Of a stretch of 64,000 bases of DNA, positions 4,237 to 4,998 are shown one piece after another. This DNA is from Octopus sinensis (taxonomy: Eukaryota): assembly GCF_006345805.1 (NCBI RefSeq), contig NC_043001.1, positions 110,298,001 through 110,362,000 on the forward strand, written 5' to 3'. Both the position numbers and the translations under genes were made by a program. The notes beneath the pieces are model-generated. The model was not told the origin of the DNA. It saw only the letters and a program-made list of their open reading frames with translations, and did not search any database. Every line of letters begins with the position of its first letter. The first letter of the stretch is position 1.

Positions 4237-4998
4237 CTTAGCACACCGGGCGAAATGCGTAGCCGTATTTCGTCTGCTGTTATGTTCCGAGTTCAAGTTC
4301 CGCCGAGGTCAACTTTACCTTACATCCTTTCGGGGTCAATTAAATAAGTACCAGTTACGCACTGGGTCGATATAATCGACTTAATCCGTTTGTCTCCTTT
4401 TTTGTCCTCTCTGTGTTTAGCCCCTTGTGGGTAGTAAAGAAATAGGTATTTCGTCTGCCGTTACGTTCTGAATTCAAATTCCGCCGAGGTCGACTTTGCC
4501 TTTCATTCTTTCGGGGTCGATAAATTAAGTACCAGTTACGCACTGGTGTCGATGTAATCGACTTAATCCGTTTGTCTGTCCTTTTTTGTCCTCTCTGTGT
4601 TTAGCCCCTTGTGGGTAGCAAAAAAATAAGTATTTCGTCTGCCGTTACGTTCTGAATTCAAATTCCGCCGAGGTCGACTTTGTCTTTCATTCTTTCGGGG
4701 TCGATAAATTAAGTACCAGTTACGCACTGGTGTCGATGTAATCGACTTAATCCGTTTGTCTGTCCTTTTTTGTCCTCTCTGTGTTTAGCCCCTTGTGGGT
4801 AGCAAAAAAATAAGTATTTCGTCTGCCGTTACGTTCTGAATTCAAATTCCGCCGAGGTCGACTTTGTCTTTCATTCTTTCGGGGTCGATAAATTAAGTAC
4901 CAGTTACGCACTGGTGTCGATGTAATCGACTTAATCCGTTTGTCTGTCCTTTTTTGTCCTCTCTGTGTTTAGCCCCTTGTGGGTAGTAAAGAAATAGG
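4237..4998 (+). mobile_element. SINE family S1 multimer: one partial head plus four ~184-bp bodies
   Basis: Units start at GTATTT at 4265, 4446, 4630 and 4814. B-box-like GAGTTCAAATTCC is present. Units 2-4 are nearly identical. Confidence 0.9.

Follow-up and report, generated by a model that had tools for sequence, protein, structure and literature searches.

A recurrent tail-to-body junction in multimers of an octopus SINE and its possible origin by insertion into the element's own family

Alu elements insert preferentially into the A-rich linker and tails of resident Alus. Site-specific retroelements that lack long terminal repeats (non-LTR elements), such as R2, R1 and those of the Tx1 clade, can join their 5' end to the target by homology, and template switching by reverse transcriptase gives rise to U6-L1-type chimeric retrocopies, in which the downstream partner is broken at variable positions. 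The Tx1 clade and microsatellite targets have been discussed (PMC4494074, PMC4640811), as have long and short interspersed nuclear elements (LINEs and SINEs) with a poly(A) signal and 3' tandem repeats (UnaL2, ZfL3) and RTE-related retroposons, whose microsatellite-like 3' ends are linked to the first base of the duplication (PMC4758252, PMC6007223). Dimeric SINE families are listed in SINEBase (PMC3531059), and the octopus element OR2 is a CORE-SINE (PMC4758252). The subject of the present analysis is a SINE, here termed S1, that forms unusual multimers in a 64,000-nucleotide stretch of the Octopus sinensis genome (NCBI RefSeq assembly GCF_006345805.1, contig NC_043001.1, positions 110,298,001 to 110,362,000 of the forward strand), hereafter the window. 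The name is simply the label used in an initial annotation of the sequence and carries no claim of kinship with the plant S1 SINE.

At five loci of the window a single head is followed by successive body-tail units, each downstream unit starting at the same nucleotide of the element (Table 1). All counts of units, subfamilies and targets given below derive from this one 64-kb window, which holds ~25 SINE units. It is argued here that S1 may insert at one nucleotide of its own family by means of the site preference of a partner LINE, and thereby generate head-[body-tail]n arrays, a proposal to which we give an even chance. The initial annotation had taken the multimers for the work of a self-targeting SINE; as a whole, that interpretation is partly supported, with moderate confidence.

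S1 is ~235 nt long. Its head takes up the first 54 nt (positions 1-54) and is followed by the body, which spans 55-167; the 70-nt tail, tail A, ends ...CCCCTTGTGGGTAGTAAAGAAATA(T/G). Positions are numbered on the free monomer at 6005-6241. A sister family, S2, with a variant S2', has the head and body in common with S1 but carries another tail, tail B, ending ...GGCCTTGTGCCTAGAGTAGAAAAGAAT. S1 conforms to the description of a SINE in being short, dispersed and multicopy and in having target-site duplications of variable length (14, 9, 19, 10 and 7 bp among the SINEs of the window). ARAGORN detected no tRNA in the head and Rfam gave no match to it. A box-like TTAGCACGCCGGG and a B-box-like GAGTTCAAATTCC were spotted by eye only, and the stretch that separates them adopts the fold of a 16-bp hairpin instead of a cloverleaf. 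The body may be akin to the CORE domain of cephalopod CORE-type SINEs.

The hairpin is conserved across the head-body boundary (positions ~36-66; 6032-6080 in the window, and equivalents), with the form GAAATGC(G/U)-UAGC-(C/G)GUAUUUC. Its closing pair covaries, being G-C in alpha heads (GCGTAGCC) and U-G in beta heads (GCTTAGCG), with both sides altered in 3 of 11 copies. The boundary between positions 54 and 55 (54^55, the caret marking a cut or join) lies one base pair inside the hairpin tip, and members of the family carry there the internal site GC[G/C]^GTATTTCG. A strongly decayed relic of the same family at 190-340 (plus strand) retains GGCGGTATT, and an S2 copy at 38182-38312 (minus strand) has an internal deletion from ~45 to ~72 that removed the 3' arm of the hairpin together with the GTATTT site.

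Over the five loci there are eight joins of the form AAA[T/C]A[G/A]^GTATTT, and at each of them tail A ends and the following unit starts with its position 55. When the free monomer (6004-6241) was used as a blastn query against the window, a match ending at monomer position 237 was followed at all five loci by a match starting directly at 54/55 (4238-4996, plus strand, four units; 6880 to 6558, minus strand; 22303 to 21953, minus strand; 24021-24550, plus strand, three units; and 50074 to 49744, minus strand). The 12-mer AAATAGGTATTT, with at most one mismatch, occurs nine times against an expectation of 1.25, a count reached in none of 100 shuffles, and eight of the nine occurrences are junctions. 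Variants of the junction are AAACAG^GTATTT at 22060 and AAATAA^GTATTT at 4624 and 4808, and the fused sequence GAAATA-GG-TATTTC is itself nearly palindromic. Position 55 directly follows 7 of 11 independent tail-A ends and none of the 7 tail-B ends (Fisher p = 0.013). The orientation is direct in all seven events, and the truncation point is position 55 in 7/7 S1 joins. Seven independent junctions at 54^55 in one orientation, along with a free copy at the same 8-mer, form the pattern of a site-specific retroelement. The blastn and 12-mer results bear out the initial description of a head-[body-tail]n-body architecture with one exact junction at five loci. Its remark that the last body has a different tail at 6505, 21900 and 24021 was likewise correct, the tail being tail B in each case (on the unit at 24438 in the chain that starts at 24021).

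In an alignment of all units, those at the same locus are not mutual closest relatives, units 2-4 of array A (A2-A4) excepted; with 9-23 differences in ~120 nt, they resemble units of other loci as much as they do one another. First units are of subfamily S1x (A1, C1, I1; markers 80T/83A/112A) or S1y (F1, E1a), and the units after the junction are S1y (A2), S1z (F2), S2 (C2, F3), S2' (E1b) or strongly decayed (I2). The five loci thus display five combinations: x-y-y-y, x-S2, y-S2', y-z-S2 and x-decayed. As soon as the first diagnostic base past position 55 is reached, the partners prove to be of different subfamilies, so that the junction was formed several times; and since the bases proper to the downstream unit's own family begin at unit columns 7-16, crossover or copy-choice along the 113-nt shared body is not behind the combinations. 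No diagnostic change common to "first" or to "second" units across loci was found in the alignment of all units, so that the hallmarks of a dimeric or composite SINE family derived from one master are missing. These sequence comparisons rule out that the first junction at each locus arose from a single dimeric ancestor or by in-place duplication.

These results bear on two other explanations of the multimers. In one, the junction arose once or a few times in multimeric masters, which were transcribed and retrotransposed whole and were reshuffled by recombination or by RNA copy-choice; in a related version, transcripts of such masters take in the first few bases of the unit that follows (...AAAUAGGUAUUU), and their 3' end pairs with GTATT sites. 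Duplications around the whole multimer at loci C and E1 are in keeping with masters of this kind, as are the AAATAGG end of unit A4, which resembles the result of copying a single base of a further unit, and the retention of the B-box-like GAGTTCAAATTCC in internal units; moreover, unequal crossover, which is seen in array A, can make S1-S1-S2 from S1-S2. Against them stand the five different combinations at five loci with no position-specific shared changes, and the fact that each reshuffling would have to fall within 7-16 nt of the junction. The two versions jointly are improbable.

The second explanation invokes purely local DNA events, namely slippage or unequal exchange between a GTATT in the flank and the internal GTATT of the same copy, with duplication of the 184-nt unit. 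The free monomer does have GTATT sequences 184 nt apart, and array A demonstrates that unequal exchange operates. Such events would yield identical units, however, whereas units at the same locus differ in family and tail everywhere except in A2-A4. Local events are contradicted for the first junction at all five loci, and as a general account they are very improbable.

For A2-A4 they do hold. Comparison of units 2-4 of array A gives 1, 3 and 4 differences over 184 positions, and the variation is confined to position 54 and to 174/178/184. Unit 3 combines the base of unit 4 at 54 with the tail variants of unit 2 at 174/178/184, exactly what a single misaligned exchange of unit 2 with unit 4 would give. 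This hybrid vindicates the earlier suggestion of recent unequal crossover in 4446-4998; tandem growth by unequal crossover was found in A2-A4 only, and at no locus does it explain the first junction.

A proxy for age provides a further distinction between the units, namely the number of private changes in columns that are invariant apart from them. First units have 8 and last units 19 (one-sided p = 0.026), or 5 and 17, respectively, when the heterodimers alone are counted (p = 0.008). The contrast is clearest at locus I, where the upstream unit has 1 private change and 6 differences to its nearest relative and the downstream unit 6 and 23. Downstream units, then, look older than upstream units. 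The initial annotation had proposed a comparison of the divergence and subfamily of the dimer halves, and self-targeting is favored by the outcome insofar as the subfamilies differ and last units have more private changes, but not at locus F. Some private variants that are unique in the window are shared by adjacent units: T6 in all four tails of array A, a C at column 11 in E1a and E1b, and CC-ATC in I1 and I2. Short-tract gene conversion between adjacent, otherwise dissimilar units is a possible source of these shared variants.

Evidence on the choice of target comes from free and nested copies. The free monomer lies within a perfect 14-bp duplication, GTATTCTTTGAGTA, which begins with GTATT, as had been noted at the outset. 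Its target, GCG^GTATTC, is identical over 8 nt across the cut to the internal site of beta-type copies, GCG^GTATTTC. Both strands counted, the window holds five copies of GCGGTATT, of which three are in listed SINE copies, one is in the SINE relic (at 240) and one is the target of the monomer, the only non-SINE occurrence; by base composition ~1.5 occurrences are expected per window (~1e-5 per site). Other SINE duplications in the window start with GATATC, GATTATTC and CAATATATAC, a tendency towards TAT(T)C-like starts. The microsatellite at 27842-28051, which is followed by TATGTATTC, was considered as a second GTATTC target and rejected, there being no retroposon tail at that place.

Locus G is a classical nested insertion of S1 into a resident S2. 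The head of the resident stops after AGAAGCG and resumes after a second AGAAGCG (7-bp duplication at 35868-35874 and 35653-35659). The insert starts at S1 position ~40 and ends with tail A and an A/T-rich stretch, and its removal restores an S2 colinear with the consensus. An apparent 12-nt deletion in the "S1 head" of this locus is the boundary between old and new sequence. Since the nested copy has a duplication of its own, S1 does integrate into resident SINEs by ordinary target-primed insertion.

The heads of the multimers bear on the fate of the 5' end. The head of locus E1 contains GAATCG and GCTTTGCG together. The former is otherwise present only in non-S1 copies (E3 and J; variants are GAATCT in H1 and GAATTG in S3), and the latter is common only to this head and the neighboring S1 monomer, E2. 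The mosaic fits an old S2' head that was joined to a new S1 between positions ~27 and ~47, and it is what a join by homology inside the head predicts. The remaining heads are pristine S1-alpha at F and I, S1-type at A and beta-type at C. A single duplication encloses the whole multimer at C, at E1 and approximately at F, where AATAAC(T/G)AGTAAA surrounds all four elements.

Several of these features also suit template jumping within one retrotransposition, the chief rival explanation, though an unlikely one, which would yield the same architecture. The LINE reverse transcriptase would begin at the 3' end of a SINE RNA, stop at position 55, the tip of the 16-bp hairpin, and jump once or more to the 3' end of an S1 RNA, leaving one duplication pair. 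Such an event accounts for the single duplication around the multimers at C, E1 and, approximately, F, for the apparently equal age of the F units, for the heads of A, F and I, which are of the S1 type matching the first unit, and for the location of 54^55 at the hairpin apex. Joins elsewhere point the same way: the last join of locus F leads from tail B to position ~25 of a third SINE, with AGAAT common to both, and is of a type that fits template switching, and on an unrelated metagenome contig an S1 tail is joined to S2 at ~128. Template switching has also been proposed for the exchange of SINE modules (PMC4758252). Left unexplained, however, are the 8-nt identity of the monomer target and the internal site, at ~1e-5 per site, and the use of tail A always and tail B never as acceptor (p = 0.013). 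The internal 7-bp duplication of locus G needs a real nested insertion, the units of locus I differ strongly in decay, and the E1 head includes a non-S1 marker. In addition, no free unit beginning at position 55 is present in the window, and the truncation is at 55 in all S1 joins of the window, whereas in known chimeras of this kind it varies.

The tail of S1 points to a partner LINE. The last ~45 nt of tail A align at ~80% identity with four LINE 3' ends in the window, the AATAAA motif included. The LINE terminates in AATAAAGAAACA(TATC)n, and (TATC)n stands directly 3' of all four ends; three of them also have TATC-type repeats on the 5' side. The presence of TATC on both sides of 5'-truncated LINE copies suggests insertion into, or priming on, (TATC)n. 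Past ...AAAGAAA(C/T)A the LINE goes on with TATCTATC and S1 with (G/T)G-TATT(T)C, and none of the S1 tails in the window is followed by (TATC)n. The putative preferred site of S1, TAT(T)(T)C preceded by G or GCG, would parallel the (TATC)n that follows the partner LINE. The 5'-truncated copies at 29771-30596 and 62429-63098 both encode the C-terminus of open reading frame 2 (ORF2), in the former together with the 3' untranslated region (3'UTR), and the other two ends, at 29570 and 11222, belong to 3'UTR fragments; in the window only the last ~190 residues of ORF2 are present, with a weak zf-RVT match (E = 3e-4, below Pfam's cut-off). The many long (TATC)n tracts of the window (e.g. 52841-53359) may relate to this LINE.

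The pathway proposed for self-targeted insertion is as follows. The LINE machinery would prime reverse transcription of S1 RNA, at its tail, preferentially from a nick just before (G)TAT(T)(T)C. Because this site is present at 54^55 of family members, a new S1 could insert at that point and share the resident's orientation. The new complementary DNA (cDNA) would have a head and first body bases equal to those of the resident, so that the upstream DNA end could pair with it in register and no second head would be retained, the product being head-[S1 body-tail A]-[resident body-resident tail]. The join might fall anywhere between position 1 and ~65, which would cover the pristine heads of A, F and I, the mosaic head of E1 and the beta head of C. 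The new junction, TAG^GTATTTC, resembles the original site and might be hit again, giving trimers, and arrays could later enlarge by unequal crossover. The preference itself may stem from the LINE endonuclease, from pairing of the nicked DNA with an S1 RNA extending a few bases beyond AAAUA(G/U)G, or from the near-palindrome being fragile.

Other routes to a precise join were considered and rejected. RNA processing that would give a 5' end at 55 (anticodon-loop cleavage, RNase P, intron-type cleavage or blocking modifications) lacks a tRNA fold, and 54^55 matches none of the usual cleavage or modification sites when the boxes are used as a ruler, as judged by eye. A microhomology-driven switch has at most 1 nt common to the tail end and the base before 55 to work with. 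Pairing of tail and target (GAAATA being the reverse complement of TATTTC, positions 56-61) would yield inverted products, not the direct ones observed. In-register priming of the nicked resident strand on S1 RNA would convert the head only and would not duplicate a unit.

A number of observations speak against insertion of S1 at a preferred site in its own family. Only one free S1 has a clean duplication, and the targets of E2 (AAAA^GATTATT, with extra bases at both ends) and of the locus G insert, G1 (GGC^AGAAGCG), are unlike the internal site, while nine GTATTTC sites outside SINEs are empty. The join at locus G is out of register. The three units of F appear equally old (3, 3 and 4 private changes), and the private variants common to adjacent units at A, E1 and I call for extra gene conversion. 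The pristine heads of F and I require either a join within the first ~20 nt or replacement of the old head, an escape that makes the proposal hard to falsify from heads alone. Finally, the subfamilies are defined from ~25 units in one 64-kb window. Three earlier proposals stand in modified form. Priming at GTATT agrees with the 8-nt target match, but not with the E2 and G1 targets, and the site is better written (G/GCG)TAT(T)(T)C. Resident SINE copies do seem to be targets, with locus G as a visible nested case, although they are mostly S2-type relatives and not older S1 copies. Resolution of the 5' end by homology to the old head is suggested by the E1 mosaic, with locus G, not in register, as a counterexample.

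As in Alu-in-Alu insertion, S1 holds a sequence matching the putative target preference of its partner LINE, so that new copies would pile up in old ones. Nested Alus, however, are complete, with duplications that belong to them and without in-register head loss, whereas S1 has as its site a single nucleotide position at the tip of a hairpin, with a head-less tandem unit as the product. With R2, R1 and the Tx1 clade S1 shares one precise 3' junction, a multicopy target and an RNA containing sequence identical to the DNA upstream of the target, which permits a homology-based join; it differs in being a SINE unit, in having its own SINE family as the target and in a specificity that is not absolute (E2, G1). 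Like UnaL2 and ZfL3, the LINE of the window ends in a tandem repeat, and window SINE duplications tend to begin TAT(T)C-like; unlike them, S1 has no terminal repeat, and the "repeat-like" partner sequence lies in the target. Template-switch chimeras and composite SINEs resemble the S1 arrays in the head-to-tail fusion inside one duplication pair, but the arrays have a fixed downstream cut, one upstream tail type and many combinations. Nested hot spots, site-specific LINEs, repeat-tailed LINEs and SINEs, and template-switch chimeras are all known; targeting of the hairpin tip of an element's own family is absent from the literature searched. Literature searching by sequence strings gave no match, and no description was found of these multimers or of a SINE whose targeting of its own hairpin tip yields head-less tandem units.

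Table 1. Coordinates of SINE multimers, single SINE copies and LINE 3' ends in the window (T, the 19-bp sequence GATTATTCAAAAGAAAATT; TRF, Tandem Repeats Finder)
Feature	Position	Strand	Remarks
Array A, head	4238-4264	+	5'-truncated (from monomer position 28); alpha type GCGTAGCC
Array A, unit 1	4265-4445	+	body and tail A, S1x; AAATAG end joined to GTATTT of unit 2
Array A, units 2-4	4446-4997	+	S1y; 4446-4629, 4630-4813, 4814-4997; TRF period 184, 4.0 copies; unit 4 ends AAATAGG
Free S1 monomer	5991-6255	+	monomer 6005-6241 in 14-bp duplication GTATTCTTTGAGTA (5991-6004, 6242-6255); target GCG^GTATTC
Locus C	6486-6888	-	duplication GATATCAAG (6880-6888, 6486-6494) enclosing head and two units
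Locus C, head	6836-6879	-	
Locus C, first unit	6666-6835	-	S1x, tail A
Locus C, second unit	6495-6665	-	S2, tail B
Locus E1	21900-22318	-	T 22300-22318; mosaic head 22250-22299
Locus E1, first unit	22066-22249	-	S1y, tail A
Locus E1, second unit	21900-22065	-	S2', tail B
E2/E3	21412-21899	-	second T 21881-21899; S1 monomer E2 ~21638-21880
E2/E3, continued		-	third T 21619-21637; S2' monomer E3 21412-21618
Locus F, chain	24021-24800	+	alpha head 24021-24068; S1y 24069-24252; S1z 24253-24437
Locus F, continued		+	S2 24438-24604 with tail B; third SINE family from its position ~25, 24605-24800
Locus G	35455-35890	-	resident S2 (35868-35890 and 35455-35659) split by 5'-truncated S1 (35660-35867)
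Locus I	49744-50074	-	alpha head 50026-50074; S1x unit 49843-50025, tail A
Locus I, second unit	49744-49842	-	much decayed, 3' side cut off
LINE 3' ends	29516-30696	+	fragment ending 29570, (TATC)50, then 5'-truncated copy 29771-30596, (TATC)25
Second LINE 3' copy	62337-63220	+	copy 62429-63098; (TCTA)24 upstream, (TATC)28 downstream
Third LINE 3'UTR fragment	11089-11300 (wider 11040-11300)	+	to 11222; TATC-like repeats before, (TATC)n after

The minus-strand region 21412-22480 is a cluster of head-to-tail SINEs in which the 19-bp GATTATTCAAAAGAAAATT occurs three times, in each case directly before a SINE head. This position would point to re-use of one site by two insertions; the triplication reflects either two such re-uses of one target or duplication of a segment. 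Upstream of the cluster lies another SINE family, X, with a tail like tail B and further copies near 23256, 40201, 41898 and 43787. Elsewhere, a reverse transcriptase from another LINE and a mariner-type transposase have left decayed fragments at 16217-17346 and 34432-34728 (both minus strand), with best database relatives 57-65% identical. The window is eukaryotic, with ~37% G+C and very abundant microsatellites. The region 8400-13740 is rich in (GGT/AGT/GTA)n trinucleotides and has a strong G-over-C skew; its open reading frames are of low complexity and gave no Pfam match.

When collections of metagenome, viral and prokaryote genomes were scanned with exact patterns for further SINE copies, chance matches alone were obtained. 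Protein-level queries with the LINE C-terminus, an antisense frame spanning the SINE junction and the other transposon fragments led to three short metagenome contigs in ENA. In one (L021, ERZ23499442) an S2 fragment from position ~128 comes after a related SINE of the S1 type, and two (L019, ERZ23872221; L020, ERZ23872314) encode the C-terminus of the same LINE family as in the window, at 73-77% amino-acid identity. The related SINE and LINE sequences on these contigs imply that a related host genome contaminates those metagenomes.

Carried to its full extent, the proposal is that the 184-nt body-tail unit acts as a site-specific retroelement that targets its own family's hairpin tip, with the specificity of a (TATC)n-LINE and a homology-joined 5' end, and that repeated hits and crossover build tandem arrays, leading from SINE to satellite-like DNA. 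This fuller version we hold tentatively, at somewhat less than an even chance. If true genome-wide, it would make S1 a clear example of a SINE that mainly targets its own family, and both the clustering of SINEs and the occurrence of head-less tandem units would be accounted for. In annotation pipelines, arrays of this kind would be miscounted, being taken either for one long SINE or for tandem repeats. The arrays would also offer a natural system for the study of homology joining of retroposon 5' ends, and insertion at the hairpin tip would be a defined first step in the birth of SINE-derived tandem repeats, a mechanistically defined route from SINE to satellite-like DNA.
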